DNA from: Octopus bimaculoides
Lineage: Eukaryota
Length of the DNA: 64,000 nt
Direction of reading: 5' to 3'
Assembly (NCBI RefSeq): GCF_001194135.2
Contig: NC_068983.1
Span: 53,475,009 to 53,539,008, forward strand
Shown here: piece by piece, positions 28,751 through 62,832 of the stretch
How positions within the stretch are numbered: the stretch's first letter is position 1
Layout: each line of letters begins with the position of its first letter
Program-made: the position numbers and the translations under genes
The notes under the pieces: generated by a model
Seen by the model: only the letters and a program-made list of their open reading frames with translations
What the model was told of the DNA's origin: nothing
Database searches by the model: none

Positions 28751-28878
28751 AATAACGATGAGAGCACATTTGCAGGCTACGTGTATGATGCAGTCTGGGT
28801 GTTTGCTTATGCTTTGGATAAGTTATTAAAAAGTAACCCAAGTGCATTAGAAGCTCTTCATACACCAGCAACAACAAG
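28751..28878 (+). CDS. VKR: Venus kinase receptor exon (first found): Venus flytrap lobe, NNDESTFAGYVYDAVWVFAYALDKLLKSNPSALEALHTPATT
   Basis: Poly-T tract plus CAG acceptor; AG|GTCAGA donor, phase 2; YDAVW..A.AL motif typical of GABA-B/class C GPCR-type Venus flytrap modules; joins the next exon in frame (AG+T=Ser). Confidence 0.9.
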
Positions 28879-29214
28879 GTCAGATATGATATTTTAATAC
28901 CTTATCTTTTCTTGAAAACAACACCTCATGATGATCATTATGATGATGATGATGGGGAGGGGGATTTAGCAGTGGTGGTGGTGATGATGATGATGCTAAT
29001 ACTGATGAATTGAAAAGCAATTAAGGAATTTAAATTTAAGATTACAGATATATAATAATTTATTTAAGAAACAAACAATTTTGAGGAAGTCTTCCATTTT
29101 TAAGCCATTCCATATGAAGTAGGAATCAATTAACTGCGTCACCCTTTCTCTGTGTGGGGACACATTGTTTGCTTATAAAATTCAGACTCATTCTAATAGG
29201 AAACAGAAAGTATT

Positions 29215-29580
29215 CCTTTACTTGTTTCAGTCATTTGACTGTGACCATGCTGCAGCACCACTTTTAGTCAAAGAAATTGATCCCAGGACTTATTCTTTGT
29301 AAGCCTAGTACTTACTCAGTCTCTTTTGCCGAACTGCTAAGTTATGGGGACGTAAACACACCAACATCGGTTGTCAAGCAATGGTGGGGGGACAAATACA
29401 CACACACACACATATATATATAAGACAGGCTTCTTTCAGTTTCCGTCTACCAAATCCACTCACAAGGCTTTGGTTGGCCTGAGGCTATAGTAGAAGACAC
29501 TTGCCCAAGGTACCACGCAGTGGGACTGAACGTGGAACCATGTGGTTGGGAAGCAAGCTTCTTACGACACAGCCATGCTT
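29215..29580 (-). mobile_element. Family A SINE
   Basis: Colinear with 1684-2098. Confidence 0.85.
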
Positions 29581-29614
29581 GTAATGATAATATTGATAAT
29601 AATAATAACTGTCT

Positions 29615-30394
29615 AATTTGGCACAAGGCCAGCAATTTTGAAGGGTGGAGATTAGTCAGTACCTTGTCACCAGCACTTGTACTTCATTTTATCAACTTGG
29701 GGTGTGGGAGATAAAAAACAAAGCTGGCCTTGGCAAGATTTGAACCAAGATTGTAGAGAGTCAAAATAAATACCATAAGACATTTTGTCTGATGCTGTAA
29801 TGATGTTCCAATCCAGTACCCTTAATAATTATAATAATGGTTTCAAATTTTGCCACAGGGGCAGCAATATGGGGGGGGGGGAGATGAGTCGATTACATTG
29901 ACCCGTCTACTATAGGCACAAAACCTGAAATTTGGTGGGAGGGGATAAGTTGATTACATCAGCCCCAGTGTTTGACTGGTACTTGTTTTATCAACCCCAA
30001 CACGATGAAAGGCAAAGACAGCCACAGTGGAATTTGAACTCAGAATGTAAAGATGGACAAAATGCTGCTAAGCATTATGCCCAGAGGCCTAATAATTATG
30101 AGAAAGGATTAATATTTTTATTGATTATAATTAATAATAATGATAATAATAATAATGATAATAATAATAATAATAATAATCCTTTGTACAAGAGGCACAA
30201 GGCCTGAAATTTTGGGGAAGGGGACTAGTCAATTACAATGACCCCAGTGTTTCACTGGTACCTAATTTATCGACCCCGAAAGGATAAAAAGCAAAGTCAA
30301 CCACGGTGGAATTTGAACCCAGAATGTAAAGAGCCGGAAGAAATGCTGCTAAGCATTTTGACTGACATGCTGACGGTTCTGCCAGCTCACCACC

Positions 30395-30435
<41 letters not shown>

Positions 30436-30870
30436 TCTTTCTAATTTTGGCACAAAGCCAGCAATTTTGGAGAAAGGGGGCAGGTTTATCACATCAACCC
30501 CTGTCCTTGACTACCAGTTGGTCATGGCTGGATTAGATCTCAGAACATAAAGAACCAGAAGAAATGATATTTAACTTTTTCTCTGACATGCTAGCAACTG
30601 TGTCAGCTCACCACCATATCAAGCATAATGTTAATGGGTTTTAATATTGGTAAAAGGCTAGCAGTTCCTTTTAAGGGGAGGATGTTGGCTGATTACAGAA
30701 ACCCCAGTGCTCAACTGGTAGTTTATTTTGTAGGCTCCCAACTGGATAAAGGGAAAAGTTGACCTTGGTAAAATTTGAACTCAGAGTGTAAAGTGCCAGG
30801 AGAGATGCTACTAAACATATTCTCCAATGTGCTTGCAATTCTGCCAGATTGCAGCCTTAATAATAATAAT
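29615..30870 (-). mobile_element. Cluster of about six family C SINEs separated by (AAT)n
   Basis: Repeated GGCACAAGGCC...AATTTT...GGGG...ACCCCAGT...ACTGGTAC...GAATTTGAACTCAGA...CTAAGCATT...CTGCCAG units; another copy at about 24290-24495. Confidence 0.8.
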
Positions 30871-31021
30871 GATAACAAAAACCACAAAATTAATAATGAT
30901 AATAATCACAATTAGTCTCATGTTGAACATGACCGTAATGATGATGTCAAGATTTAACACATGATAGACATGTGTTTCTTATATATGAGACACAGTCATA
31001 TGGTAAACATTTGTTTTCTAG

Positions 31022-31395
31022 TATAGGTGTAAGCATGGTTGCTTCCCAACCACATGGATCCAGGTTCAGTCCCACTGTGTGGCACCTTGAGCAAGTGTCT
31101 TCTACTATAGCATTGGACTGACCAAAGTCTTGTGAGTGGATTTGGTAAACAGAAACTGAAAGAAACCTGTTGTGTGTGTGAGCCTTTGTGTCTGTGTTTG
31201 TCCCTCACCACTGCTTAACAACTGGTATTGGTTTATTTACATCTCCGTAACCTAGCAGTTTGGCAAGAAGAGTGATAAAGTAAGTACCAGGCTTAAAAAA
31301 ATTAAGTACTGGGGTTGATTCATTCAACTAAAAAATTCTTCAAAATGGTGCCGTAGTATGGCCACAGTCTAATGACTGAAACAGATAAAAGATAA
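31022..31395 (+). mobile_element. Family A SINE
   Basis: Colinear with 2671-3035. Confidence 0.85.
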
Positions 31396-31549
31396 TGATG
31401 AGAGTGATTTTTTTCACTTTTACTTTTTACAGGAGATAGGTTTTGTCATCCGTTTTGGAGTAGGTTGACTTATTTTCCATAAGATTCCTCCCATAGAAAC
31501 AAAGTTCATTTGCAGTGGGGTTAATAAAGGGAATTAAGGTGATCCTATA

Positions 31550-31865
31550 CTTTCGGTGCCACGTAAAAAGCATCTGTGCTGGTGTCACATACAAGCACCC
31601 ACATTGGTGCCATGTATAATGTACCCCTGTCAGTGCCACATAAAATTCACCTGTGCCAGTGCCACATATAAAGCATTCATTCTGGAGCAAAAGCAGAAGC
31701 ACCCAGAACACTCAGTAAAGGGATTGGCTTTAGGAAGGACCTCAAGTTATAAAAACCATGCCAAAACAGGAGTGGTGCAGCTCTCCAGCTAGCCAGCTCC
31801 TGTCAAGCTGTCCAACCCATGCCTGCATGGGAAACGGACGTTAAATGATGATGATGATGACGACA
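31550..31865 (+). mobile_element. Family B repeat, 25-bp-subunit variant
   Basis: About 5 copies of GTGCCA(C/T)(G/A)TAAAAAGCACC-like units, then the family B tail. Confidence 0.75.
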
Positions 31866-32679
31866 ATGAAGAAGAAGAAAACAAAGCATGAGGAGGAATA
31901 AGAAACTATATATTACAGATATATATTTCATACTATAGAGAAGAAAAGTTCGATTGAAGCCTTGCAGAATTCAAACTCAGAAATGTGAGCCATCAAGTTC
32001 AATCTGCTAAGAGTATTAAGTGATATTCTCTACAATAAATGTTGTTTCTTTCATATGATGGGATATAACATTTCATTAGTGTTTCCTAATAGAACCAATA
32101 AAAACAAACATTTATGAATATGAATGCTTATAATTGCTTTAATAGCTAATAATACCTTAGGACATAGTTATTATAACAAGTAGTACGTACACTTTTCATT
32201 ATAGTAATAGCGTTGTAAGTAATGTCATCCTGACTACGAAAGATATCAAGGAAGTATATTTCCTTTGCTCAAATTTAGCAGCACTGCATTTTCGACATTC
32301 TACCTAGATATCTTATTAACATCCAAAAATATTGAAAAATTAAACATATAACTATTTTACAGTTAATGTCTTTCTGACAAAAGAAATATGACTTTTCTTT
32401 CATTTTAATTTTCTTTTATTAGCAGTTGCTGTTGAAATTCAAATTGCTGATTAGCTTGTGGGAATTGAAAATAAAAAATAATAATAAAATGAAACTAGTG
32501 CAAATAAAAGAGAAATCTTCTTTAGAAAACCAATTATTAGCTAACTGGGTTATGGTTATTTTCTTAATCTGAGTTCTTGCAGATATACAATTTCATTCAG
32601 TGTTGATTAATATAATTTAATGCTAATTTCATGCATCTCAGAAAGGCTGATAATTATTATTTTCTAACTATTTAATATT

Positions 32680-32730
<51 letters not shown>

Positions 32731-32738
32731 GCTATAGG

Positions 32739-32770
<32 letters not shown>

Positions 32771-32870
32771 NNNNNNNNNNNNNNNNNNNNNNNNNNNNNN
32801 NNNNNNNNNNNNNNNNNNNNNNNNNNNNNNNNNNNNNNNNNNNNNNNNNNNNNNNNNNNNNNNNNNNNNN
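32771..32870. other. Assembly gap (100 N)
   Basis: N run. Confidence 1.
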
Positions 32871-32902
32871 TATATATGTGTGTGTGTGTGTGTGCCTATA
32901 GC

Positions 32903-32970
<68 letters not shown>

Positions 32971-34458
32971 CAGCTTAGGTGGCAATTGCAAGAATAACCG
33001 TGTAGCTTTTATGATGCTTTCAGTAATTGTTTCAAGTGTCAATGTAGTGGTAAGAATACATAGTCAGCCTCTTGATGCACTCAAACTTTGGCCTGTTCAA
33101 ACACTGAGGATGGTCTGCACTAACAGTTAGCTGATACTCATTTTCAGCTATGTACACTGGAACAATGTAAAATGATGTGACATGCACAGGGGCAGAAATT
33201 GAACCCAGTACATTATGGTCATGAACCCGAATCTCTAACTACTAGGCCATTTACATTCATATTTGTGTGTGTGTGTTGGTGTACACACACACATAGAGTA
33301 ATAACCACGAACTGAATGTATAATTTGGATATTACTACATGCATATCAGTATCAAATTTACACACATGATTAAGTATTTACATATATATGTGTGAGTGTA
33401 TGCGCATATGTGTATGTATGTATATGTGTTTGTGTGTGTGTGTGTGTGTGCATGTATAAACAAAATGGGAAAGTACTCAATATTGAAATTAAAGTTGTAT
33501 AATGTATAGGAAGCAGAAATTTCATAAATATTTATAACATCTTCTGAATATTGGCAATGATAATAAAGATTTACCAAGTTTCAACTTCCAATAATTATAT
33601 TCACATAACCCATGAAAAAATTTAATTTTAAGCTAAGGAGTATATATATACTTGTCTCCCCCCCCCCACACACACACACGCACGTGTGTGTGTTTATGTG
33701 TAGATGTGTATTATTGGAAATTAAGCAGTATTGGAGTGTTTGCAAGCATGAACAGACTCATACTTCTGTTTAATTCTATCAGTGAAGAATTCGTGATGAC
33801 ACAGACATGAGAACATCAGTAAATGTGATCCTAAAGTGTTCAGGGAAGGGACCATCATGATGACATGGAGGAACTGACTGGCACCCAAGGCATCACCAGT
33901 AAACATTAGAACAGCTAAAATACAAGGCCCTTCTTGGTTGTGTAGCCCAGTGCAAAACCAGACATGAGTATGCGTTTATGACTTTATATGACACAGCCTA
34001 TAGGAAAGAAAGAGAGGCACTGGTGCAAGCAGATAGAGCATTGGCACTGCAAGCAAACAGTGGCCTGATGAAATGGAAACAGTTACTGAATGGGGTGTTC
34101 CCTAATAGGACATTTGGAAGTGGAAGCTAATATATTACTGGTACTTAGGTGCTGGCTTGGCTGTGTGGTTAAGGATTTCAGATTTCAACCCACTGCATAG
34201 CAACATGGGCTGTATTGGGCTGAAGGGTGCAACAGCAGGCTCAGTTTCTGTTTTGTTCTGTCAGAGAAGAATTCATGATGATACAGGCATAAGTTTACCT
34301 GTTAAAGTGACACCAAAGTGCTCAGTGCTGGGACTACCACAGGGTAACCCCTAAACGTAAAATATCTTCTACACTATTCTTGAGTCATCCAAAGCACTCT
34401 GTTTGAGACTTGCTTCACAGAAACTAAACAGGAACCATTGTACATGTGTGTGAATATG

Positions 34459-34870
34459 CAGGGCCAGATTAAGACCCATAGGGGCCCTAAGCACTTTAAA
34501 GGTTTTGGTGCTCCCATATATATGTAATTAAAAATATAAACAATAAATTATAAACCATAAAATAATTTTTTATTTTTCAAAATACAACAAAACTAACAGT
34601 AAGATGAAAAATAATGTTTGTTTTTGTATATTTTCACTTTATTTATATTTGAAATATTTTCTCCTGCTTTTGATCAGATCCTCAAAATTAATCTTACATC
34701 ACATATTTGCTTCTATATATAGCAGAGATAAAGTGTCCCAAGTATTATTTTAACAACTTTAAGGTGATTTCTTTTGTGTCGTAAACCATTTACCAGTTCT
34801 GTGATGCCCCCACTTCACTTAATGCCCTAAGCTTGTGCTTATTCTGCTTAATGGTTAATCCAATGCTCTG
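34459..34870. mobile_element. Probable non-autonomous DNA transposon remnant
   Basis: Begins CAGGGCCAGATTAAG and ends TTAATCCAATGCTCTG (degenerate inverted match); GCCCTAAGC sub-terminal motif near both ends; no clear TSD. Confidence 0.45.
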
Positions 34871-36766
34871 TATATGTGTGTGTGTAGGTATGTGTTTGAG
34901 TATTTCTCTGTCTTCATATTGTCCCATATGGCAAACACTGTGACAGTCAGTGTTTATTCTGTCATAAACAATCTGTCCCATAGCTCATGATTTCATCATA
35001 TGATAAGTAGAATAAAAAAAAAAGTCCTTACTTGAAAATCAAGGTCTGCAACAGGAAGGGCATCTGACCATTGAGCACTAACTCTTATCTAAGCCACACC
35101 AGCTTAGGAAAAATAAAAACAGAAATAAAAATGGTTGTGATGATAAAGATAACTCCAGACAAGAAGGAAAGGAAAGTGAATCTCAGCAGTATTTGTATTG
35201 AGAATGTAAAGAATTGTAACGAAATACTGCAGGGTATTTTGTCTGGTTCTCTACCTTTTCTCATCTGCAACACCATTTTTCATTATGATTAATAAATAAT
35301 AATTCTATGTCATATTGTTATTGCCTTTAATTGCTTCAAACGTTGTCTATACCTATTAATATTTATTAAACAATGATATAAAGGAAATTACAGCTGGCTA
35401 TGTCTATTGTATATCAACTAAAGTGTCAAGGATTCATATTCCATCTCCAGTGAAGAAATATGTCCTTGCTGGTTCTCAACCTTTTCTAGCTCAATACCCG
35501 CTTTGACCTAATGGGGCTTTACAAAAGCCCTTCACCATGTTTTACCCCCCACCCCAAAGTAGATTATTTAATCTAAGTGAAATTAATTTTACATAATTGT
35601 TTATTACCCATATGTTCTTATCCGACCACATCTAACATGTGCTATGTTTTAGATATTTGTGTGAACTAGCGCCACCTATAACAAATCTTAATGAAATTTT
35701 ACTAAAGGTGTTGAAGGCTTATCCAACAAAATTATATTGGATCTTGGTGTATCAGTCACATTTTTGCTCAATGTTCTACTCCTGTTTTAATCCCAACAAA
35801 GAGTTTTTGAAAATGTATTTAGAATATGAGCATTATATGGTTTAAATATTTTATTTCTGAAACAAAAATTACAGCCCTTTTAAACACTCTGTTCCCTCTA
35901 TATCACCCCTTAACATTTTCCCCTTCTTATCAGCTCATAATTACATCCAAAGGAGTGCTACAGCCCAAATTAAAAATCACCAAACTAGATGTGAGCAGAT
36001 ATTATGTCAAGAACACTCACTGACAGTAAGCCCCATGCCACTTAGGAAAGCACTCACGCCAGTGCCATGTAAAAAGCACCCAGTACTCTCTGTTAAGTGG
36101 TTGGCATTAGGAAGGACATCCTGCCTTAGAAACTATGCCAAAACAGACAATGGGGCCTGGGTAATTCTTCAGCTGGCCAACTCCTGCCAAACCATCCAAC
36201 CCATGCCAGCATAGAGAACAGTTGATGGTGATGGCAATGATGATATATGGAGTAGGTTAATTAGCAATCTCTCTTTTATCCCTTGTTAAATCACTATTAA
36301 ACATTAACTCGTTAATTCTCTATTTCTTGATTAGTCCTGCTTGAACAAAACTAAGGTCTTTGGTCAAATATTTTGGTGTGATCAACAGACCCAACAGTTG
36401 AGAGATTCCATGTTTTTGTCTTGTTTAGGACAACACTGCACACACTAACATTCAGTATTTGAATATGCCAAGTATTGTGTTTGGGGCATTTGCTTCTCGG
36501 CACAGTATGATCCAGTGTATCTGCAAGATTTTTAGGGAGGCCATAGCAGAAGCAGGCAAGCTGGAAATGCACAGCGTGTTCCAAATGACTGGCATATAGG
36601 TACCAATGTAATGAATGCTAATTCAACATCCTAATAATAACAACTAAATTTCCTTTCAGTTACTTATTAACATCTCTAAAAGAGAACAAATGCTTTATGG
36701 GAATAAATTTTGGAGTTTTAACAGCTACTGTATGTGTTAGAGGATGTTACCAGAGACAGAATTTAT

Positions 36767-37024: not shown

Positions 37025-37323
37025 TCAGCTAGTACAATACATCAATGAAACCAAATTTGATGGTGTATCTGGCCACATAAGTTTCCAAGGAGGTGAACGC
37101 ATAGGTACAATTAACATTCTACAATATTTTCACAACGAAACCCGTCTCATTGGTCAATATATCCCAACTATCCATAATAATCCTCGCATAAACATCCGTG
37201 GTAGTACACCTCCAGTAGCTTCAGGAAATGAAGAAATAGATAACGGAATTCTTCGGCTTTACAAGAGAAAGGTGCGCTGGCTCTCACCAAATGGGAAACC
37301 TCCTGCAGATGGTAGGCAAAATG
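37025..37323 (+). CDS. VKR: VKR exon: end of Venus flytrap module (QLVQYINETKFDGVSGHISFQGGERIG...VRWLSPNGKPPADGRQN)
   Basis: TTTTCAG acceptor, phase 2; F.GVSG.I.F and W....PP.DG motifs of GABA-B-like VFTs; two N-E-T sequons; donor G|GTTAGT after 37323 (alternative in-phase donor G|GTAGGC after 37311). Confidence 0.9.
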
Positions 37324-37854: not shown

Positions 37855-37864
37855 NNNNNNNNNN
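37855..37864. other. Assembly gap (10 N)
   Basis: N run. Confidence 1.
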
Positions 37865-37902
<38 letters not shown>

Positions 37903-41039: not shown

Positions 41040-41461
41040 TTGAGAGAAACTGAGTGGCCGATGACAGAACCCCCTGATTGGCACCCATGCCGGTGACACA
41101 AAATGCACCATTCTAGCGTGGTTGATGCCAGTGCTGCCTGACTGGTCCCGTGCCAGTGGCATGTAAAAAGCGCCACTCGAGCATGATCATTGCCAGTACC
41201 ACCTGACTGGCTCCCAAGTTGGTGGCATGTAAAAAGTACCATTCAAGCATGGTTGTTGCCAGTACCACCTGGGTGGCACGTAAAAATCACCCACTACACT
41301 CTCGGAATGGTTGGCATTAGGAAGGGCATCCAGCTGTAGAAATTTTGCTAGATCAGATTGGAACCTGGTGCAGCCTTTTGGCTCACCAGCCCTCAATCAA
41401 ACCATCCAACCCATGCCAGCATGGAAAGCAGATGGTAAACGACGACAATGATGATGATGAG
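41040..41461 (+). mobile_element. Family B repeat copy
   Basis: Same subunits and tail as the other copies. Confidence 0.85.
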
Positions 41462-42361: not shown

Positions 42362-42503
42362 AAAAAGTCACTGAATGCCATATAGAGAAGTTTCGAGCTT
42401 TCTTGAATGTCAACTGTGAAATGGCTGTAATTCTTGCAAATGTCATGGCATTTGGTTTCTTTTCTATCATCATATCCGTTGTTCTTATAATTATAAGACA
42501 AAG
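42362..42503 (+). CDS. VKR: VKR exon: stalk plus single transmembrane helix (KVTECHIEKFRAFLNVNCEMAVILANVMAFGFFSIIISVVLIIIRQ)
   Basis: Not in the ORF track; translated by hand. TTTCAAG acceptor, phase 1 (G+AA=Glu); AG|GTAAGT donor, phase 2; about 25 hydrophobic residues followed by basic residues. Confidence 0.88.
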
Positions 42504-43746: not shown

Positions 43747-43990
43747 GTATTGCAGACGTAACAGAGGTTCGAACCAGAAAATGGAAGAACTCGGGTTATT
43801 ATCTACTCGATTCTCCCGGTGCCTATCTCTTGATGGCTGGGAATTACCTCGAGATAATGTGGTATTAAACAGAAAACTAGGCGCAGGAGCATTTGGTACT
43901 GTGTTTGGAGGAGAGGCTTTCCTTGACGATCAAGGTTGGCAACCTGTGGCGGTAAAAACACTAAAAGTCGGATCAACCATTGAACAAAAA
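43747..43990 (+). CDS. VKR: VKR exon: juxtamembrane region and kinase subdomains I-II (YCRRNRGSNQKMEELGLL...WELPRDNVVLNRKLGAGAFGTVFGG...VAVKTLKVGSTIEQK)
   Basis: Long pyrimidine tract plus CCCAG acceptor, phase 2; GxGxxG loop (GAGAFG) and VAVK lysine; AAA|GTAAGT donor, phase 0. Confidence 0.95.
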
Positions 43991-44308: not shown

Positions 44309-47300
44309 TTAATGCAGAAATAGTTTATCACATATCATACATCTATTATGGTCTACTTTCTTGAAATAAGTTTGTCTTTGATTGAGGGTGTCTACACATA
44401 AGCACCTCATTTACAGAGTCGTTAATTCATAGCTTTTTTAATGATTACAGAATTATTTTTAATAACATTCTGGAAGTTCTTGCCTACAGATGTGTGAATC
44501 TGGTGGGAGATATTCGTGGTTGTATGTGAATGACACAAAAATTTATGACTGTAAACAAGATCACATTATTCTCCAAATAGGAGCCTATCATTGATACGGA
44601 TAAAGAGAAGATTTATAGGGTGCAGATTCCAGGGTATTCACTTAATTCATGTCCTGATAGTACTATCTGCAAAATCTTCCTGTACAGAGATTTAGTTTTT
44701 AGGGGCTTTTCTTGGTTAGAAACTTCTTATACCAAGTATAAACTTTAACTTTGCTAATAACATGAGCAATATCTTAGCTTTCTTCAAATTCTACTGACAT
44801 TGATTTTTTTTTGTTCAGTGAAATAAATACCAGTTGAACACTGAGATCGATGTAACTGACTTACTCACTTCCCTCAAAATTGCTAGACTTGTTCCAAAAT
44901 CTTAAATCAGTAATTGTAGTTAATCAATTGAGAAAATTTACTCAAGATAGTAAAGGAAATGTCTACTTAGAAACATCTCTCTTGAAAGTAACAGAACAAA
45001 TATTCAAGGCATTCCATTTGACTGAGGACTGGCAAACCAGATGGCTACACCAGGCTCCAATCTGATCTGGCAGAGTTTCTACAGCTGGATGTCCTTCCCA
45101 ACGCCAACCACTCTGAGAGTGTAGTGGGTGCTTTTAAGTGTCACCGGCAAGAGGGCCAGCCAGGCGGTACTGGCAACGGCCATGTTCAAACTGTGCCAGA
45201 TCAGATTGGAGCCTGGTGCAACCTTCTGGCTTGTCAGTTCTCAGTCAACTCATGCCACCATGGAAAGCAGACATTAAACAACAATGGTGATGATGATGAA
45301 TGAGCTTTTCTCAGTTTATGCTGACCAAAATCTATTCACAAGGCTTTAGCTGACCCCAGGCTGTAGTAGAAGACATTTACCCAAGGTGCCTCACAGTGGT
45401 ACTGAACCAAGAACTATGTGATTGGGCAGTGAACTTTTTACCACACAACTGTGCTTGATCCTATGAATATTTATATATATATATATATATATATATACAT
45501 ACATACATATACACACAATATATCTATATAGTAGTTAAACATTATATTTATGTGTTTTATATATATACATATTTATATAATATTGGTGGAAGATGCAGAA
45601 TCAGTAGAACATCTAACAAAAATATCTTGTGTTATTTGGTTATATCTCTTTATGTTCTGGCTATGTCCCTTTACGTCAAGGGCAACTTTACTTTTCTTCC
45701 TTCCGAGGTTGATTTATTAAGTACCAAACAAAGTAATGGATTTGATAGAATCAACTAAAATCCCTTAAAGGTAGTGCTTCAGAACAGTCACAGCTCAATG
45801 ACTGAAACCAGTAAAAAGAAGAAAGAAGTTCTGGAGAGAGCAGCTTACAGTCAGTATGTTTTGAAAAGGATTCTTTTTATCTTTCTTGAATATATATGTA
45901 TATATATGTCATCATCATCATGATGTATGCGTACGTATGTATGTATGACTTTCCAACTTCATGCAATGGCGCCTACTTAAAAGACATCCGTACTTAACAA
46001 TTTATCGATATTCCCTTTTTATGTTTCTCTTATATAAAGGAATTGTTATTACATTTTTATCTACAACAACAAAGGAAACTGCTTATTGAATTTGAATATC
46101 ATAAGTATAGAAGTCTAAGGTTTGCTGTCAAAAGATTCATTTCAATGCATACACATAAAATATTGTTCTACTCCATGACTTTTGTGCAAGGTATCAATCA
46201 TGGGCACAAGCATGATGATGTGGTTAAGAATTTTGCTTAACAGTTACATGGTTTTATGTTCAATCCCACTACTTGGTATCTTGAGAAAGTGCTTCCTACT
46301 GTTAACTCAGACTGGACTGAGGATTTAAATTGAAACTAAGAAGACAGAAACTGTTAGCCTATTAGATGAAGGAGGGTCATTGTGAAAGAGGGTCATTGAC
46401 CTAATCCATCTCCCTGTGAAACACCACCACAGAGCCCTTGTATGCCTTTGGTGAAACCCTTCATATTGCAAAGCCACCTGTTTCTTCATCCCTTTCTCAG
46501 AGTTCTGCTAAAAGTAATGGTTTAATCATCATCAGTTAACATCCATTCTCCATGCTGACATGGGTTGGATGGTCCAGCAGGAGCTGGCAAATCAGAGGCC
46601 TACTCCAAACACCAGTCATCTGTTTCAGCATGGTTTCTTTTGGCTGGGTGCCCTTTCTAACACCAACCACTTTACAGAGTGCACTGAAGTCTTTTACATA
46701 GTGCCGGCACTGGTTCCTTTGTACTAGGCACTGGCTCCTTTGTACTAGGCACTGGCATGGGTGCTCTTATGTGGTGCCTGCACTGGTTCTGGCATGGATG
46801 CTTTTTACACGATGTCAAATGGTTGTGAGGAAGCATATGGCCTAGTAGTTAAACAACTGGGCTCTCAACCAGAAGGTTGTAAGTTCAATTCCTGCTGGAG
46901 GAGGCATGTTGTGTCCTTAAGTAAAGCACCTAACTGCCTCCAGTTCACTCAGCAGGTAGATATGAGCATTAAGATTGACAGAATGCTCTGAACTAGTTGC
47001 TGCTTGAGTCAAAATTCTTCAAGCTGGGAAACGGATTTATCCAACAGTAAACAGCTATACTCCTTTACACTCTGACTAAAAACCATTAAGAAAAACAGAG
47101 GACAAGAGACAAAACTTTAACATATTAAATACTGCCGTTTAAAAACTTTTTATCAACAGCACAATGCAGAGAGTAAATATTTTTTTTGTTTTGTTTTTTT
47201 TGTGTTTTTTTTTTGTTTTTTGGGGGGTTTTTTTAAGGTTTTTCCCTACAAAAATCATACAATATTTTTCCTTCTGAATTGTAAATATTATATCAAGTAT

Positions 47301-47617: not shown

Positions 47618-49012
47618 TTGTGTGTGTGAAAGAAAGGGCAAGAGGTGAGGAAAGGGCAAAACAAGAACTATAGCATTCAGTAAGTGACTGTTTGTTTTAA
47701 TTGCAAATCAGATTTCCTAAGCTAAAACCACTCTGTACTTTTAAACAATGAATCATTTTGGAATTGGAGAAGTAATAGAAAAAGAAAAACAAACAAAAAA
47801 AAAACATTTGTGCTTCAACCAGTACAAATAAAATCATAACTTTGTCCATTACATTTATTAAAATTCCTTTGTGTTGTCAAAAGTAATTACCCTGATAGCC
47901 AAAAAACAACACATAATTACATAAAAAGTTCAATGACTTTTTTTTTTTTCAATTTATTTTATTGACGACATTTTACCAAATAGATCTAGTTATGTTCTTC
48001 CATGCATATGACTGATGCATTATTATGATAATTCTAATGACTGCAGCCACTGTGGCGACAGTATGTGCTAATTTATTAGCTTTTATTTTTGTCCGTTGCA
48101 ACAGTAAACAAGTTTGAGATTTCAAAGAGAAAGTATCTAGAATAAAACTCAGATTATCGATACTTAAATTAAATGGTTGTAAGTCGTTAGTTTCATGATA
48201 TATGGGAATAAATATATATAGCAAAGTTAGAAAACAAACTAGTCCCCTAAGTATTAACAACATTGTAAAGAATATATTCTATGTACAAGTGTGTTTTTCT
48301 CTGAGAAACAAAAGAAGATTAGGAAATGGAAAATTCCTTTTAGTTATTGACTTTCATGAAAGCAAGAGAACATTTATGTAGAGAAATCCTTCAGCAATGT
48401 ATAATAATGCTGCAATATAAGTTCACAAACGATCATTGTTACTTGTGTTAGTCTGAGAAAGAGAGCAAAGCCTACAATCTATGTATTTCTTTCTCAAATG
48501 GAGGGATTAAGTTAAACAGATGATGTCTGTGCAATCAATATTGGGAAGAAATTGTTCCTGGTTTACAGATGAAGGGTAATTATGGGTATTAAGGGACAGT
48601 GAAAGGTTGTAGTTTTAATGAGAAAGAATTAGCCAAAGTATTTAGGGATGACTCTGTAAGATGAGAATGTGGAAGTAATGAGAGGAATAGAAGAGAACAC
48701 ATCAAATTGGTTTAGGTGACATGACATAGATTTAGCTATAAAGCTTAGATAATTACAGACCATTGTAGTAGTGAATGATTTCAAGAAATGTAACAGCTTC
48801 AAAGTGAGTAAGGTTTTGCAGTGGTTTAATGATTGTGAGTTGGACTATCAGATGAGAGACTACCTTTTAGATGCCTTTTAGACTACCTTTATTAGGTAAT
48901 AGACACTGTGTGAGCAATATTCAAGTGTAGATTGTAACTGTGCATTTAAATGCTTACCAGATATAGAGACTCTGATACTGAGAGGAAATTTATATGGAGA
49001 ATGCCAGAGCAG

Positions 49013-49414
49013 CTGTCTGGCTCCTGTGCCAGTGGCACGTAAATAGCACCATTTGAGCATGAATGTTACCAGCATCGCCTTATTGGTACTTGTGCCAGCG
49101 GCACGTGAAAAAACGTTCGGGCGAGATCATTGCCAGTGCCGCTGGACTGGCTCCTGTGCAGGTGGCACGTAAAATACACCATTTGAGGGTGGCCGTTGCC
49201 AGTACCGCCTGACTGGCTTTCATGCCGGTGGCACGTAAAAGCACCCACTACACTCTCAGAGTGGTTGGTGTTAGGAAGGGCATCCAGCTGTAGAAACTCT
49301 GCCAAGTCAGATTGGAGCCTGGTGCAGCCATCTGGTTCACCAGTCCTCAGTCAAATCGTCCAACCCATGCTAGCATGGAAAGCGGACGTTAAACGATGAT
49401 GATGATGGTGATGA
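49013..49414 (+). mobile_element. Family B repeat copy, CpG-rich and near consensus (young)
   Basis: Retains many CpGs (GGCACGT, GCGGACGTTAAACG) that are CA/TG in other copies. Confidence 0.88.
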
Positions 49415-49869
49415 ATACTATGTTTGCACATATAAAATACCAGAAACTACTGGGTTACACTTTCCAGTAGACTACAATATTTAAAAAGGGGCAGTATGAT
49501 GGTTTTGTTTCTTTAGACATGAAGTAATAGTATTTCACTGTTGAATTGTTAAGGGTTTCAAGGCTGTTAATGAATCTACGGAACTATTATTATACATGTC
49601 TTTACAGTGCTTTTCAAATTGTAAATATTTTCATAATTTTATGTAAAAATTATCTGTCCTTTATTCAAAAGACCAGTGCACAATGTTGTTATTATACCAC
49701 AATGATGAGCATCATCAATGTTTTCATGTTCATTTATCCAAGCTGACATGAATTAGACAGATCTGCTATCAGTATAATTCCACTCAGTATATCTTTTCAT
49801 CTATAAAGCCCAACATTCTGCAAGTTAACCTTACCCCCTCTTTCCAAATCTTTTGTAGTCCTCATCTGC

Positions 49870-53346: not shown

Positions 53347-54242
53347 CAAGGTGCATTCAAAAAGTATCCAAATTATTTTTTCCTGCCAAAACTAATGCTA
53401 CATGCACAAAATTCTTTCGATGGGCGGTAACACCATCTTTCCTGTGCATGAGTGGAAATTTTCATACTGGTCGGCCATGTCAGTTCTCAGCTGTTATGGT
53501 TTAAGTATGGTTGTGTAATGCATGCTTGTCAAATTTTCGTTTTCATGCAAGATGCCTGGACGCATTAAGAAGAGATCATAAACCCATGTCTAATCCCCAG
53601 TGATGATGGTCTTCATAAAGTCTGGGTCATGGTTTTCACAGTCTAGCATGTCACAGTGATTTCCATGTGGAATTGCTCTGCCAGCAATGTGGGGATGAAT
53701 TTCGCCAATGCTCTCCACGTGTACAAATCCTTCAATGGAATGCACTGATCCTGTGCCTGTTCCCGTTTCATGAGTAATTTTCTGGAGAGTTACATGACAG
53801 TCTGCTATGACTATGTGCCAAACCTCCTCAATCGGTTCCTCATTTTGGCTTGTGGATGGCCTGCCTGAGTGTGCCTTGCTCTTCACCGAGGTGTGGTCAT
53901 GTTTGAAGCAGTTGTACCACTCCTTGATCTGAGTTTTGCCCATGGCTCAATCACCAAAGGCCTGCTGAATCTTCTGGATGGTTTAAGCTTGAGTATCACC
54001 AAGCTTTTAGCAAAACTTGATGCAATATCTTTGATGCGTTTGGTGAAAATGAAAATCCAACAAGCACACACTACACATCTGCACTCTGGGCATAACAGCT
54101 GGGAACTGACACAACCTACCAATGTGAAAATCTTAGTGCATGCACAGGAAGGGTAGTGTTACTTCCCACCCAAAAGACTAAGCCCACATGGCATTAGTTT
54201 TGGTGAGAAGAAATAAAGAAGGTACTTTTTGAATGCACTTCA
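53347..54242 (-). mobile_element. Defective mariner transposon with transposase remnant and about 200-bp inverted arms
   Basis: TA flanks; termini CAAGGTGCATTCAAAAAGTA / TACTTTTTGAATGCACTTCA; minus strand reads QRYCIKFC*KLGDTQA*TIQKIQQAFGD*AMGKTQIKEW...SGRPSTS...IITGD*TWVY (mariner HTH through the first catalytic D) with several stops. Confidence 0.92.
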
Positions 54243-55493
54243 TATGTCTTAGTGATTAATGTAAAAGAAGAGCTGATAGTGTGCTCATTTACAAGAAAAT
54301 CCATAAATATATAGTATGATGTAGTTTATATTAGAATGCTTATTAGTTCAATTGTTTAGACTTTTACTGAATGTCATAGTATATTTCTCAGAAGTTTATT
54401 AATAACAAACATGTTAGATACCAAGATATTCATATGAATTAATAGGAAAGTTTTCCTCTTGTAAAAGATCTTTAGTAACAACAGCTAATTGATAAACTGA
54501 TAGTTTTTTTTTGGGGGGGGGGTCACCTTTTTTCTTTTGCAGGAATGTTCAAATTATGTGCTTTACCTTTCTTCAAGTCTCATTGCAAGATGTGAAATCA
54601 TAAATTTTTCAGTTGTGTAGTGTCTTAATATTCAGCCCACCCCTCAATCACCACACCTCTATACATTGAGAAATCATTGACAAAATATATATCAAAGGAA
54701 GTAATTTAATTTTAGATAACAGCCTAGTTACATAATTGCAGTTTCTGTTTTAAAGTATCTCCTAATTGCTTTCCTGTGTAGATAGTTTACCCTAATTTCA
54801 ATTAATTAAAATTCAAAAAAAAATTATTTTTATTTTATTACTTTTTTTAACTTTTTTTTACTCTATTCTCCTCTCCACCATCTTGATTTTTGTGTTAAGA
54901 CTTTTCAGTTAGTGTACGTTACTCCTCTTTCATCAGCACACTCACATACACATCCAACCATAATACTACACATTGCTATTAATTCTCTTGGTTTATTTTG
55001 ATCAATTTTACGATGCCAATCTTCTATTGCAAAAACTGATTTACAAAACATTAAAATAATTATTCAAGTGAATAATAAACTATTACAGATTGAATCTGTG
55101 TTATAGCTTGAGATCAGCATTAAGAATCATGTCCATTATTTTCTTTTAAGCTTGTATTAGAAATTTATGATTTCTGTATTACGCAGCTAATACTAGCATG
55201 GAAATCTGAATATGAAATTTAAAACCTTTTTGCTTTCTTCTTCCTAGGACATTATTTAAAATGATGTTAAACAGTCACCTACAAATGACTTGGTTGTTGT
55301 TGTTGTTCTTCTTCTTATTCTTGTTGATGTTGTCAACCCTTCAATCAAATTTTTATATTTTATTGAATTCCTTACTCATACCATTCTGCGTATAAAGATT
55401 GATTTTTAACCTTCTGTACATACATTCCTTCACTATATTGGAAATCATATATTGATTAATCTTGTTTTACAAAATTTATTTTTGCTTCCAAAG

Positions 55494-55614
55494 CTTGATT
55501 TCTTGAGTGAAGCAGAAATGATGAAAAGATTCAACCATCCTAATATTGTCCAGTTACTTGGAGTATGCACCCAAGGGGAGCCTATCTATACAATAATGGA
55601 ATTTATGTTACATG
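55494..55614 (+). CDS. VKR: VKR exon: kinase subdomains III-V ([40 protein letters not shown])
   Basis: Not in the ORF track; translated by hand. TTCCAAAG acceptor, phase 0; FLSEA and HPNIV.LLGVC tyrosine kinase motifs; G|GTGAGT donor, phase 1. Confidence 0.95.
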
Positions 55615-58092
55615 GTGAGTGATTAGCAACAACTTTCTGTATCACATTTTTACTGACATCATTTATATTTTAAACAGTCACTATTCAGTTCTAATTCTTG
55701 AAATTTCTTTTATTCAATGACTATTTGTATTCAAACTAAGCTGATTACTGCAAGAATTTAGCAGACGTTTTTCTGCTGTTCAAGTAAATGTTATACTCTT
55801 TAAATATCCACACCATGAATCTCAACTTAAAACACTAGCCATCACGGTGTGTATTTATTAAATCAGTGTGTCAAATATCTAATTATACTTTGTAGCTTTT
55901 TATTTCTTCCTCATTTCTCAAATAACATTTTTATCAGTTTATCTCTCTCTCTCTCTCAATATTTCATTCAACAGATTATCTAAGAAGATTATGTTTTATT
56001 GTTATTTTATTAGTTTTTAACATTTTAGTAATAATTTTGTAGAGAAAAAAAAATGAAATTATATTTTACTGCATGAAAAAACATCTAGCGAGTAGATTCA
56101 ATAATATTCAACCATCAAGAAAATGCCAGAAATTAATTGTGTGTATCTCTCAACAAACGTTTTAAAGCAAGAGTCTGGAAAGAACTAGGAATCATTTTAA
56201 CTACTTTTGCCAATTTTATTATTTTTATTTTTATGAAAATATTCATCAAGTAAAAAAATATATACATTTTTGAAACTAAAAATGTACAAAATTTTTGTTC
56301 AGTTTTATGAGATTATAAACTATGAAATATATGCTTCATTTAATGTTTATATTTCATATCTACCCATATGGAAAGTCAAGCAATTTAATTTCAGTTTCTT
56401 TGAGTCTATAAGAGGTACCAATATTGATACATATTAAATGGTAAGTTCTTAGTGAGCCAATTCAATGATGGAAGACAAGTTGGAACTAGCTTCTTTTACC
56501 TATATTAACTAACAATTTGGTTAAGACTTGAATTTTTTCCTTGGAAAATCAGTTTTAAATTTGGGAAATTATTCTTTTGATAAACTCATTAGACATACAA
56601 CATAGTTGTCACAATTATACTTTGATTATGTTGCCAATAATAATGGGAAAATATGAACATCACAACACACCCATCTTTTTAAATTTGAAACCTTATACCT
56701 AATAATAAATACAATATAGTAATACAACAAAGCATAAACAAACCTAATCGACAAACTCACAGATCATGAAACTGCTCTAAAATCCTATTCACCTATAAGT
56801 TGTTTCCTTTCTTTAAATATTCTTCCACTACTACAATGGTCTCTATTCTTTTGATCTTTATAACTCTCTGTCATGTCACCTAAACCAATTTGATGCATTC
56901 ATTTCTCTTTCATTCTCTCCCTCTACTGTCTCATCTTCCAGTGCCATTGTTAAATACTTTGTTTCATCTCTCTCCTTAAAACAACCTTTCAGAGTCCCGC
57001 ATTGCCTATAATTTTCCTTCAGCTAAAAACCTACACTAAGTTACACTCTGTATCAATTGTACAAACATCTGTTTATTTAATTCCTCTGTCAGGGAGATAA
57101 GTAGGTTATAGGTGTTGCTATCATTCTCAAACTAATTAGGTGGTTGACTTAATCCATTACCCTCTTTAACATTACCATCACCTGACCCTTCGGTGCCTAT
57201 AGTCATGTTCACTCTATTACAAGCAATCTGACCAGGTTTTAGGACTGGAGATAACTTTACTCCTTACACTCCCAAGTCTCAGAAGACCTTCAATATGGTC
57301 ACAGGTGTTGCCTATTTTCCTCAGTTTAATCCATAGCAAAAACAAAAATACTTAACAAATAATTAGATAATTAGCAACTGGTGAATAATTGTTATTTATG
57401 AATCTTTTTCTTGCTGATGAGAAAGTTCATAACCAAGAGGAATTTTCTCTCTTACAATATTCTTTTGCCTTCAGAGAAAATATACTGATACAATGCGTGT
57501 ATGTATGTATACAAATCTATAATATTAGGTTGAGGAAAAAGTTTGTGTGCCATGTTAAGCATTATTTTAACACAGCATTATTTTTAAAATAATGCCATGT
57601 TAAAATAATGCTTAACACGGCACACAAATATTTCAAAATTCCGGATTTCTTTATTTGGGTAGTACTTTTCCGTAATATACAACCCTAACAGGTTTTTACT
57701 TCATATATAGGGGGTTTTAAATTAGCCCCTTTCTATTAATCTATAGAGAGAATGTTACCCGTATTAGTAATATATATATATATCAACATCGAAGCGTTAT
57801 CCTTTAGTCTTGTTTTAAATAGACATGACTCCAAGATCATTAACATTACAAAAATGAGTAAGAACACTATGCCTATGTAATCCTAAAGTCTTTTTAGCTT
57901 TCTTCTTATTTTCAGCTACTGACGAGTACTTTTTGGCAACTCAGATTATTAAAATGAATTTATTGTCTTTCTGTATGAAACAATTATATAGCTACATGAA
58001 TAAAAAAAAAAAAATCATCATCCATATTAACATCTAATCTCCATTTATGTAAAATATGTTGAACTTTGTTTAATAAGCTAAATTATATACTT

Positions 58093-58128
<36 letters not shown>

Positions 58129-59214
58129 CCTCATTGTGTATGTTAGTATAAATGTACTATGTGAAATGATTCTGTTATTATCTCAGTTGAAAACAATTTA
58201 GTGTGCAGGCAAACATCTCTACTTATTTTCCAACTGCAGCTAGGCATTTCAATACATTGTCAAAATTATCTTCACCGACTCGAAGCAATTTTAATCTCCT
58301 TCTCTATAATCCAGACAGTTTTATTATCAAACACTAGCAGCCGTTCACGTTACACACTCAGTATGTCTTTCAACATTAAGTCACATCTTATCTGCTCTTA
58401 TTCTGCAACTTTAGAATTGGTATTTAGTTATATTGTTATACATTCTAAGTTCAAATCCTACCAATATTGATTTGTTTCTTTCATCCTTCCAGGGTAGATA
58501 AAATAAGTACCAGTTAAGTATTGAGTTCTATTTAATTGTCTGTACCCTCCTACACAAGTCTGTGAACTTGAACCAACGTTAGAAATCAATAATTTAATAG
58601 CAGATATTTTTATCTTTTAATTACACATTGTACAGCTTTCAAGTGTTTAATGAAAGGCCTTTATTATAGATAAAGTTAAGATTGATTAAATTATAGTGTA
58701 ATCTTATATTATAATTTAGTTTCCAATGACATTTTGTTCAAGTATTCATGATTATTTAAATTTATGGCAAATATAATATTTTGATCAAATGAGATGACTA
58801 ACACTTGAAATATTAACACTGATTTCATTCTACAATTGGTGAGAATGAAACACACTCAATCTCTTCTATATTGCTGATATTAAATCTTATTTCATTCTAA
58901 GAGAGGCAATTTAGATGTACCAAGTCATATTTGATACCAATGTCAATTCATCTATTCAATTTAATATTGGTGAAAATCAATTTAGTGGTAAATCAGACAA
59001 CAAAACAATTAATAAACTGTTGTAATGTTTTGTGTACCCAAAACGAAAAACATTTTGTTCAAAACGAGATTGGATGTTACTCTTTGGACGACTTTTGTTT
59101 TACTAATCATTGTATCTGTGGAAGAATGTCATGGTTTAGAACAATCAGAAGTAGAACAAAAATCTAAATAAAATTTTGTACATTCAATAAAGAGGTTCAA
59201 GAATAGAAAAAATA

Positions 59215-59419
59215 CTATTTATCTTTTACTTGTTTCAGTCACTGGACTGTGGCTGTTCTGGAGCACCACCTTGAAATCTTGAAGAATATAGTCAAACAAA
59301 TTGACCTCAGTACTTGTATTTCTGTCTGGTACTCATTCTATTGCTGAAGCACTAAGTTCCTGGGACAGAAACCATCACCAGTTGTCAAATGATGGTGGGA
59401 GTAACAAACACAGAAACAT

Positions 59420-59464
<45 letters not shown>

Positions 59465-59615
59465 AGGTTTCTACAGTTTCCATCTACCAAATTCGTGCAT
59501 GTGGCATTGGTCAGCCTTAGGCTATAGTAGAAGACACTTGCCCCAAAATGCTGCACAGTGGGACTGAACCTGAAACCATCCAGTTGCAAAGCAAGCTTCT
59601 TAATCAAACAACCAC
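59215..59615 (-). mobile_element. Family A SINE
   Basis: Colinear with the other minus-strand copies; internal (CA)n. Confidence 0.8.
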
Positions 59616-60054
59616 GTTTAATAAAAATGAGTTACATGGCTCTAAAGATCCCTAGATCCTTGAAATAAAATAGTACATATGAAGATATAAGATTCAGAAA
59701 GCAAAACATAGTGAGAGACGGAAGATAGAAATGTGAGTGTAAGAGGTTGGTTGGAACAAGACTTTCTAAATATTGTGGGCTGATCAAATAAATAACTGAA
59801 GATAACATTCTGTTAACGAAAGTGAATAATATACTTGTTACTTAGCCGAGAGTCAGTTTTGATTAATGGTTTCGCTTTTCTCTGTTTACAGTACATCATT
59901 TCCTATGTTGATTGGGTTAGGATTTGTAGGACATTTAGCCACTATTTCTAAAAGGGTGAGTGTTCAAATAGAAACCCTGTGTATTGTGGTGTAAGCTTTA
60001 GGAGGTTATCTCTGTTCATAAAAATGTTTTCTTTCTCTGGAAATATGAAAACAA

Positions 60055-60410
60055 ATAGCTGTGTGGTAAGTAGATTGCTTACCAACCACATAGTTCCAGG
60101 TTCAGTCCCACTGCATGTCACCTTTGGCAAGTGTCTTCTACTATAGCCTCGGGCCAACCAAAGCCTTGTGAGTGGATTTGGTAGACAGAAACTCAAAGAA
60201 GCCCGTCGTATATATATATGTGTGTGTGTGTGTGTCCAACATTGCCTGACAATCGATGCTGGTGTGTTTACATCCCCATAACTTAGCGGTTCAGCAAAAG
60301 AGCCTGATAGAATAAGTACTGGGCTTACTAAGAAAAAGTCCTAGGGTAAATTTGTTCAACTAAAGGTGGTGCTCTAGCATGGCCACAGTCAAATGACTGA
60401 AACAAATACA
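60055..60410 (+). mobile_element. Family A SINE, near consensus
   Basis: Full head, core and tail. Confidence 0.88.
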
Positions 60411-60484
60411 AGTTAATGTTTAATTGTTATATATATATATATGCAATGGTTAGTATGCTCCACTGGATGTGTAATGTAAGTGTA

Positions 60485-61170
60485 CATGTTTGACAGACAG
60501 CCAGTGTTCTGAGAGAGAGGTTAGGCATAAGAGGAATTGGTTGCTGCATGTAAGAGAGAAGATTGCACTGGTTTGGTCATGTGATGCAGAAAGATGCCAA
60601 CAGTTCCATAAAGAAGTGTTCTGTCTCAAAGTGGATGGAACATGTGGAAGTGAGAGATCCAGGAAGACATGAGATGAAGTACTGAAGAATGACCTCAGGA
60701 AGTTGAACTATCCAGGTGAGATGACAAAGGACCAAGATACCTGGTGCCTGGCCATACTCGAGAAGACCCGTACGTCACAGCAGAAGTGTTATGATTGATC
60801 CTGCCGGTGGTGTAAAGCACTTGTGGTGGTGTCACGTAAAAACGCCCATGTGGTTCCATGTAAAAATGTTCATGTGGTGTCATGTAAAAGAGCCCATGCG
60901 GTGCCATGTAAAAGCACCCCTGCGGTGTCACATAAAAGTGCTTGTGTGGCACCATGTAAAAATATCTGTATGGTGCCATGTATTAGCACCCGTCCAGTAC
61001 CACATAAAAACATCCAGCACATGCTGTAAAATGGTTGATGTTAGGAAGGGCATCTGGCTGCAAAAACCATGCCAAAACAGACTGGAGTCTGGTGCAGCTC
61101 TCTAGATTGCCACCTCTGGTCAAACCATCCAACCCATGCCAGCATGGACAATGGACATTAAATGAAGATG
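60485..61170 (+). mobile_element. RTE-clade LINE 3' fragment with 3' UTR
   Basis: LRERLGIRGI...RRLHWFGHVM...(frameshift)GTCGSERSRKT*DEVLKNDLR...AILEKTR, followed by a minisatellite and the CCATCCAACCCATGCCAGCATGG...TTAAATGA tail. Confidence 0.85.
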
Positions 61171-61490
61171 ATACATACATACATATATATAGTCCTATTT
61201 CAGCAATGAAATGCGCGTAGTCTATGTACTAGCACTGACTTTTATACATTTATACTTTCATACTTTATATTATTGTATTGATTTTTACTGTCCAATTTAT
61301 AATTTTGATTTAAAAATTTTTTTAAATTAATATTTTTATGATGAATGTTTCTTTATATGATATATTATTTAAATTTAAAATTTTAGATTAAAATCTTAGA
61401 TAAATATTAATATGGTATATGCCTCACAGCATGGATTTGGACAGGTTCTGAGTTGACTGAGTTGTAGAGTGGTGGTTCGTCTCTAAATTA

Positions 61491-61529
<39 letters not shown>

Positions 61530-61761
61530 TGTGGTACCAGTGCCAGTAGTGTGAAGAAATCACTTTAGACATTGTAGAGTGGATGATGTTAGGAAGGGCA
61601 TCCAGTCATTAAAAAAATATGCCAAAGAAGATAGTGGAGCTCAGTGCCACCCTGTGACTTACCAGATATTGTTAAACTATGCAACCAATGCCAGCTTGGA
61701 AAATGGAAATTAAATGATGATGATGATATAAAGTGCTTAAATATGTTTGTTCTTGTAACAG

Positions 61762-61912
61762 GTGACCTAAAAACTTACTTATTGTCTCGCCGGAGTCTTG
61801 TTGATCGAGAAACTATTGAGGCTGAAGACGTTGCTCCCTTTAAGCTAACCCAAATGGCTACTGATGTTGCGAATGGACTAAACTACCTCCACAGTCTTAA
61901 ATATGTACACAG
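61762..61912 (+). CDS. VKR: VKR exon: kinase subdomains V-VIa ((G)DLKTYLLSRRSLVDRETIEAEDVAPFKLTQMATDVANGLNYLHSLKYVH)
   Basis: ACAG acceptor, phase 1; GDLK.YL and A.G..YL....VH motifs; AG|GTATGT donor, phase 2. Confidence 0.95.
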
Positions 61913-62719
61913 GTATGTACGCAACTTCAATATTTCCCATATGTCAACCCTAGGTTTTGAATTTCCTTTAACATTTTATTCTGCTTCATTTGCAAACAGT
62001 ACAACTGTTGACAGTAATCTAAAATAAATTCATTCTTGCATTCTCATGGTACTTCTTGAATCTACATTCTTACAACCACAGATGTGGCTGTGTGACTGAG
62101 AAACTTCCTTCCCAACCGTGAGATCTCAAGTTCAGGCTCGTTGCACAGTAGCTTGGGCAAGTGTCTTCTACTATATCTCTGGGCCAATCAAAGCCTTATG
62201 AGTGGATTTGGTAGACAGGAACTGAAAGAAGCCTTTAGTGTGTGTGTATGTGTTGCTTGTCTTGACATTATATGGTGGTTGTAAAGAGGCATCTTGGTGA
62301 TACAAGCAATGTTGTTCATTTTCACTCTTTTGTAAAAGACACATCTGCCACACACATTGATCATAGCAGACGACCATGGGCACCAGAATTCCCACATCAC
62401 GTGATTCTGACCTACTGGACTTCATCAATGGGAAGCACCTGATAATCTGATTGTCTGAGACAGAAATGCTGTGAACACATGTTTTTGTCTCAATAGGCTT
62501 CACCACATTTCTGTAGGTGTCTTGATACACACATTTCCAAACAGTGATGCATACTAATTCAAATATGAGGTACTTTTAAACTTTTTCCTCTAGGATATTG
62601 CAAATGTTTATCCTGGAAAGCATCACAAATGATATTATGGTGACAAAGTGTTGGTCATGTTCATATTGAAAATGATTCTGGTTATTATGATAATGATGAT
62701 TTATATTTTAAAATTCCAG

Positions 62720-62832
62720 AGACTTAGCTTGTCGTAACTGTTTGGTACATTCAAATAAAACAGTGAAAATAGGTGATTTTGGAATGACGCGATCACTATA
62801 TGAATCAGATTTTTACAAATTCTCTAAAAAAG
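62720..62832 (+). CDS. VKR: VKR exon: catalytic and activation loops ((R)[37 protein letters not shown])
   Basis: Not in the ORF track; translated by hand. TTCCAG acceptor, phase 2, completes HRDLACRN; intact DFG; G|GTGAGT donor, phase 1. Remaining kinase exons were not found and presumably lie beyond 64000. Confidence 0.95.

Follow-up and report, generated by a model that had tools for sequence, protein, structure and literature searches.

Seven exons in a stretch of Octopus bimaculoides DNA very likely belong to a molluscan venus kinase receptor gene

The 64,000-nucleotide stretch of Octopus bimaculoides DNA analysed here (contig NC_068983.1, positions 53,475,009 to 53,539,008; hereafter the window) very likely carries, between its positions 28751 and 62832, seven consecutive internal exons of one molluscan, probably octopod, gene for a venus kinase receptor (VKR). 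Receptors of this type occur only in invertebrates and have been linked to egg formation in schistosomes and mosquitoes. The characterised members (Schistosoma mansoni VKR1 and VKR2, and those of Apis mellifera and Aedes aegypti) have in common with the window gene an architecture of a Venus flytrap module, a single membrane helix, and an insulin-receptor-like tyrosine kinase. Molluscan VKRs have already been listed from the genomes of Lottia, Crassostrea, and Biomphalaria, and the gene is a new orthologue of a known invertebrate receptor family rather than a new kind of gene. An earlier note, made from the sequence alone, had proposed this identity. Our results support it, as the domain architecture, the best-matching solved structure, the placement of the kinase in a tree, and the intron phases all favor a VKR over an insulin, ROS, or guanylyl-cyclase receptor.

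All seven exons lie on the plus strand, and together they span 1198 nucleotides (nt). Each of the 14 exon borders is a canonical AG...GT, and the joined exons, whose phases are compatible, form an open frame of 399 codons with no stops. The earlier note had described seven exons with matching phases and an unbroken frame of about 399 residues, and we recovered every exon where it had been placed:

28751-28878, plus strand: exon A, 128 nt, encoding NNDESTFAGYVYDAVW...TPATT, which forms a helix close to the C-terminus of the flytrap module; phase 0 acceptor
37025-37323, plus strand: exon B, 299 nt, the closing part of the flytrap module (FDGVSG and WLSPNGKPPADG), carrying a lineage-specific insertion of ~20 residues
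42362-42503, plus strand: exon C, 142 nt, a Cys-containing linker, the single transmembrane helix, and the start of a basic stop-transfer stretch
43747-43990, plus strand: exon D, 244 nt, covering the juxtamembrane segment as well as the GAGAFGTV glycine loop and the lysine of VAVK
55494-55614, plus strand: exon E, 121 nt, helix alphaC and the strands of the N-lobe as far as the hinge
61762-61912, plus strand: exon F, 151 nt, the start of the C-lobe, ending within the HRD codon triplet
62720-62832, plus strand: exon G, 113 nt, the catalytic loop (given at 62775-62783) and activation loop; phase 1 donor

Long introns (0.8-11.5 kb) filled with repeats stretch the exons over 34 kb, compared with 4.7 kb for the seven equivalent exons in the gastropod Patella. 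The donor of exon G is in phase 1, indicating that the gene continues beyond the window. At the same point, in an identical alignment column, the Patella gene has an intron of equal phase, and two further coding exons come after it.

The spliced peptide encodes the end of a flytrap module, one membrane helix, and a tyrosine kinase in a single open frame. Exons A and B together match positions 274-350 of the 353-position Pfam ANF_receptor profile (residues 5-77, E 1.6e-12). Of the flytrap module, only the final quarter falls inside the window. The Pfam PK_Tyr_Ser-Thr profile matches residues 229-396 (profile positions 2-160 of 258, E 1.4e-51). Between these domains lies one hydrophobic helix at approximately residues 163-187 (coded at ~42421-42495 in exon C), with a Kyte-Doolittle maximum of 2.63 and the basic stretch RQRYCRRNR following. 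An AlphaFold model of the partial peptide, built on a 36-sequence alignment, likewise predicts a long helix at residues 161-204 with a per-residue confidence (pLDDT) of ~90. Two cysteines in the exon C linker, C148 and C161, are invariant across the alignment. The flytrap motifs YDAVW, FDGVSG, and PPADG, which the earlier note had reported along with a single transmembrane helix, were all found by a motif scan of the spliced peptide, and the helix was confirmed by both hydropathy and the model.

The kinase contains GAGAFGTV at residue 235, VAVK at 257, FLSEAE with the alphaC glutamate at 274, the HRD motif at 361, and DFG at 381, and its catalytic loop carries the tyrosine-kinase signature HRDLACRN. 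These correspond to the catalytic motifs described for VKRs up to this point of the kinase, namely GxGxxGxV, VAxK, the alphaC Glu, HRD(L/V/I)xxRNxL, and DFG (PMC3703292). The kinase core had been called intact, and this held for every catalytic motif in range, but it can be asserted only as far as the activation loop.

Database searches placed the peptide among VKRs. In a word-indexed protein search, the proteins covering 99-100% of the peptide all carried both PF01094 and PF07714. An exhaustive search, which took in 1.84 billion cluster representatives, returned Patella vulgata XP_050398346 as the first match (60% identity, E 1.6e-142), a value indicating that the pattern is not due to chance, and Pomacea canaliculata PVD21200 as the second (59%). 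The next matches came from a nemertean, a tick, a hemichordate, an ant, a sea urchin, an annelid, a shrimp, and a scallop, and the ant cluster includes a member named 'venus kinase receptor [Lasius niger]'. The gastropod VKRs, including P. caerulea KAK6174280 (1305 residues) as well as the Patella vulgata and Pomacea (1322 residues) proteins, share the domain order of the window gene and are 57-60% identical to it over the 399 residues and 72-74% identical in the kinase. By exon, identity was 63% to Patella for exon D and 79-84% to VKR homologues for exon E (tblastn).

Among solved structures, the best match was the kinase of S. mansoni VKR2 (7zvs, 194 bits), with lower scores for IGF1R (167), INSR (158), and ROS1 (139). 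Yet the VKR2 kinase is only 54% identical to that of the window gene, compared with 74% for Patella and 44-46% for INSR, IGF1R, and ROS1. We also built a neighbor-joining kinase tree (181 columns, 500 bootstraps) of 14 VKRs and human INSR, IGF1R, ROS1, ALK, and TRKA. Each of the INSR, ROS1, ALK, and TRKA outgroup sequences was confirmed to be identical to a PDB chain, and IGF1R was taken from a PDB alignment. The window kinase fell within the VKR clade in 97% of bootstraps and grouped with the three molluscs in 56%. It was never placed with INSR/IGF1R (0%). The earlier note had named a grouping with insulin or ROS receptors rather than VKRs as the result that would count against its identification, and the tree gave the opposite.

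Independent support came from the gene structure of Patella vulgata, in which we placed introns by mapping the VKR protein back onto the DNA. The phases of the eight introns that flank and separate the window exons (0,2,1,2,0,1,2,1) are identical to those of the Patella gene. Seven of the eight also interrupt the alignment in the identical column, including the one before exon A, and the eighth lies within two residues in a linker of variable length. This agrees with a prior study, which found that intron positions are conserved among the vkr genes of cnidarians, annelids, molluscs, and echinoderms (PMC3703292). Such matching strongly supports both orthology and the exon model, and it argues against the flytrap and kinase exons being separate genes.

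The latter arrangement, in which a flytrap receptor fragment (GABA-B or ANP-receptor-like) would end after exon C and an adjacent kinase gene would begin with exon D, is highly improbable. It could draw on the C/D junction being predicted from homology and on a Lytechinus pictus cluster in which separately named models occur, 'uncharacterized protein' and 'insulin receptor-like'. By contrast, the codon left open by the phase 2 end of exon C is completed by exon D, which lacks a start context of its own, and the single Patella gene model has the C/D intron at the identical phase and column. Moreover, the homologues that span the full peptide are all fused.

It is also extremely improbable that the seven exons belong to another receptor class that resembles VKRs, whether of the insulin/IGF type, the ROS/ALK type, or the type of the receptor guanylyl cyclases, which have a kinase-homology domain. 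The human INSR and IGF1R kinases are strong matches in both sequence and fold, with 44-45% identity and the same catalytic and activation-loop layout. A fold search of the partial model returned the IGF1R, INSR, VKR2, and RET kinases without separating them, confirming the fold but saying nothing about the family. However, INSR and IGF1R have an L-domain/FnIII ectodomain, whereas the part of the window gene adjoining the membrane is ANF_receptor, and their kinases form a separate clade that the window kinase joined in 0 of 500 bootstraps. Cephalopods have a distinct gene for an insulin-like peptide receptor, which has been described in Sepiella japonica (PMC9654127).

A different source of confusion is the ANF_receptor-type module, which VKRs have in common with the class C members of the G-protein-coupled receptors (GPCRs; GABA-B and mGluR) and the natriuretic-peptide receptor guanylyl cyclases. 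Because of this shared module, databases often give VKRs the names of GPCRs or cyclases, and among the orthologues we found 'ANP receptor 2-like', 'guanylate cyclase gcy-5-like', 'GABA-B receptor subunit 2', and 'insulin receptor-like'. The ANP-receptor and cyclase names could be taken in favor of another receptor class, but the names as a whole bear out, in other taxa, the suggestion of the earlier note that such a gene might be labelled insulin receptor-like or split into GABA-B-like and kinase models. The window gene itself has one hydrophobic helix followed directly by an active-type tyrosine kinase, in place of the seven helices of class C GPCRs or the pseudokinase plus cyclase of the receptor cyclases. 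Its full catalytic set and HRDLACRN signature are unlike cyclase pseudokinase domains. The absence of a cyclase domain is judged from the closest orthologues, as the C-terminus of the gene lies past the window; the Patella orthologue carries only the ANF_receptor and kinase families.

In comparison with the gastropod VKRs, the window gene differs in its activation loop and in an extra insertion of ~20 residues that is predicted to be disordered. The activation loop has twin tyrosines (YY) in 120 of 121 VKR homologues, whereas the window gene reads FY, with Phe393 (TTT, 62811-62813) followed by Tyr394 in the sequence D-F-Y-K (DFYKF). The upstream activation-loop tyrosine, Tyr389, which corresponds to INSR Y1158, is present. 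The first of the twin tyrosines is the equivalent of INSR Y1162, which occupies the active site while that kinase is inactive, and for this reason Phe393 could alter autoinhibition. That it changes the autoregulation of the receptor is speculation, and the residue could stem either from a change in regulation specific to the lineage or from an error in one base (TAT to TTT). The YY pair is near-universal but not strictly defining for the family, as the VKR1 proteins of Bombyx and Danaus have a single Y, and VKRs of this single-tyrosine kind are known only from lepidopteran VKR1 (PMC3703292).

The insertion lies in frame in exon B, roughly at 37155-37244 (residues ~87-116), ahead of the last flytrap strand, and none of the aligned homologues has it. 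The AlphaFold model predicts disorder here, with pLDDT < 50 at residues 97-110. We also considered whether the insertion might be an unspliced short intron, and provisionally rejected this because it is in frame, spans ~60 nt, and lies within one open reading frame (ORF).

By comparison with full-length gastropod VKRs, the window covers the middle of the protein, equivalent to residues 697-1070 of the 1322-residue Pomacea VKR. In these proteins, an N-terminal extension of ~370 residues precedes the flytrap module (~396-760), and the kinase runs to ~1160 before a tail. The N-terminal extension of the P. caerulea VKR shows a weak match to OpuAC, a periplasmic substrate-binding family (residues 248-353, E 7e-6), a hint that these proteins may have a second domain resembling binding proteins. 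No further VKR exons were found in positions 1-28750 by tblastn with arthropod and mollusc VKRs, a WFLPxW regular expression, or two profile hidden Markov models run against all stop-to-stop fragments of the window. On the other side, nothing in 62833-64000 matched the rest of the kinase C-lobe, including M(A/S)PE and subdomains IX-XI.

Among cephalopods, the gene apparently lacks an annotation or a description. Searched by itself, the part comprising flytrap and membrane helix had no match in the word-indexed search, and four exon-containing ORFs had no exact match in the contig collection. The paper library searched held no paper pairing 'venus kinase' with cephalopods, consistent with the statement in the earlier note that no functional study of a cephalopod VKR was known.

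Several points weigh against reading the seven exons as internal exons of one VKR gene, probably of an octopod. Only ~30% of the coding sequence lies in the window, with ~700 N-terminal and ~250 C-terminal codons outside it. Among the missing parts are the ligand-binding residues S66 and R107 and the GYVWFLPxWL motif; the family flytrap motifs (C35, S66, R107, W128, and GY(V/I)WFLPxWL; PMC3703292) are expected ~100-350 residues upstream of exon A. The 270-nt upstream exon expected from the Patella gene was not found in the 28.7 kb 5' of exon A. No cephalopod protein in a collection of 5.8 billion matched the peptide, even though O. bimaculoides proteins were included, which fits an unannotated gene but leaves the model without confirmation from a close orthologue. 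This negative is only moderate evidence of absence, because the word-indexed search returned matches of only ~50% identity, mostly from arthropods, and missed the closest relatives, Patella and Pomacea, that the exhaustive search found. In addition, the FY in place of YY could reflect relaxed constraint or a sequencing error, and the use of the splice junctions is predicted from homology.

Some of these same observations could suggest a decaying VKR pseudogene or truncated copy, with locally intact exons from which no full receptor is made. Such a copy might lack the large upstream exon, might lose a near-invariant tyrosine, and might have no matching annotated protein. Still, we consider this distinctly unlikely. 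The seven exons are open, with no stops or frameshifts and canonical dinucleotides at all 14 splice sites; all catalytic motifs in range are intact; and the kinase retains 74% identity to Patella. As introns within the window reach 11.5 kb, an upstream intron of more than 28.7 kb would be unremarkable.

Three assembly gaps fall within the window, as follows:

22460-22780, no strand: gap of 321 N, upstream of exon A, inside (TA)n
32771-32870, no strand: gap in intron 1 (8146 nt, between exons A and B), within a (TA)n/(CA)n microsatellite
37855-37864, no strand: gap in intron 2 (5038 nt, between exons B and C), adjoining (TA)n

All three lie in or beside long (TA)n tracts and look like microsatellite-induced assembly breaks. 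No reading frame crosses the two intronic gaps. No residues were missing at the A/B or B/C junctions, either in an alignment with 40 homologues carrying flytrap and kinase or in a pairwise alignment with Patella, and the equivalents of exons A, B, and C are directly adjacent in the Patella vulgata gene. These gaps therefore leave the finding unaffected. The gap upstream of exon A, being inside a (TA)n tract, is unlikely to hide the expected 270-nt exon.

The surrounding sequence has a G+C content of 34.5% and is dense in two families of interspersed repeats. The first is a repeat of ~390 bp that resembles a short interspersed nuclear element (SINE), with an internal (CA/TA)n tract; both strands carry copies, whole or partial, at least 17 in all and 68-83% identical. 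Many of the spurious ORFs ('...LPNPLTRLW...SRRHLPKV...') are explained by this repeat, which may resemble one that is abundant in octopus genomes, a tentative lead. The second is ~400 bp long with internal sub-repeats and has ~15 copies at 71-92% identity, several of them in the VKR introns. Two decayed mobile elements were also identified. One is the 3' end of a long interspersed nuclear element (LINE), whose best match was the O. bimaculoides protein LOC106879749 (78% identity), and the other is a mariner-type relic, whose best matches were crustacean and tick 'GVQW3-like' proteins (~58% identity), too distant to be informative about the host. Judged from the sequence alone, with gastropod VKRs as the nearest relatives, molluscan origin is well supported; octopod origin is probable, the LINE relic being the sole direct pointer to an octopus. 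Rfam and tRNA scans of the window found nothing. Examples of the repeats and the two relics are as follows:

1701-2100, 1034-1414, 2690-3020, 11292-11647, 29217-29575, 31029-31389, 59225-59615, and 60060-60408: copies of the ~390-bp SINE-like repeat
48951-49420, 6733-7047, 18701-19046, 41079-41460, 45016-45301, and 63375-63631: copies of the ~400-bp repeat
17599-17871, plus strand: decayed LINE 3' end, with stop codons and a C2H2-like CPHCQRRF...SHLRTH tail
~53590-54080, minus strand: truncated mariner-type relic (Mos1 helix-turn-helix domain), with in-frame stops, inside the 11.5-kb intron

By analogy with the bee, schistosome, and mosquito VKRs, the receptor would act as a dimer (PMC3703292, PMC4522560). 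The trigger may be a small ligand or peptide hormone bound by the flytrap module, and its binding would lead to trans-autophosphorylation of the insulin-receptor-like kinase and to signalling through PI3K/Akt/S6K and MAPK. Known VKR ligands include L-arginine, which acts on SmVKR1 and the VKR of the bee, calcium, which acts on SmVKR2, and, in Aedes, the neuroparsin OEH, and characterised VKRs act mainly in the gonads (oogenesis) and in larval tissues (PMC3703292, PMC4522560). The mosquito VKR is the receptor for neuroparsin/OEH (PMC4522560), and neuroparsins have been reported in molluscs (PMC6425005). Changes in the insulin pathway also accompany octopus reproduction (bioRxiv 10.1101/340984). 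One tentative scenario, which we think unlikely as a whole, is that cephalopods keep a VKR missed by protein sets, with its regulation diverged through the lost tyrosine and the flytrap insertion. Acting in parallel with the insulin/ImpL2 axis of the optic gland, such a receptor could couple feeding state to the maturation of the gonads by receiving an amino-acid or neuroparsin-like signal.

With regard to annotation, the locus illustrates how easily a gene can be missed, split, or misnamed when its introns are long and filled with repeats; in other respects, it is an ordinary orthologue. If confirmed, the gene would provide a naturally occurring Tyr-to-Phe change in an insulin-receptor-like kinase, at the autoinhibitory position of its activation loop, and it would be a candidate nutrient or hormone receptor for the poorly known endocrine control of cephalopod reproduction.

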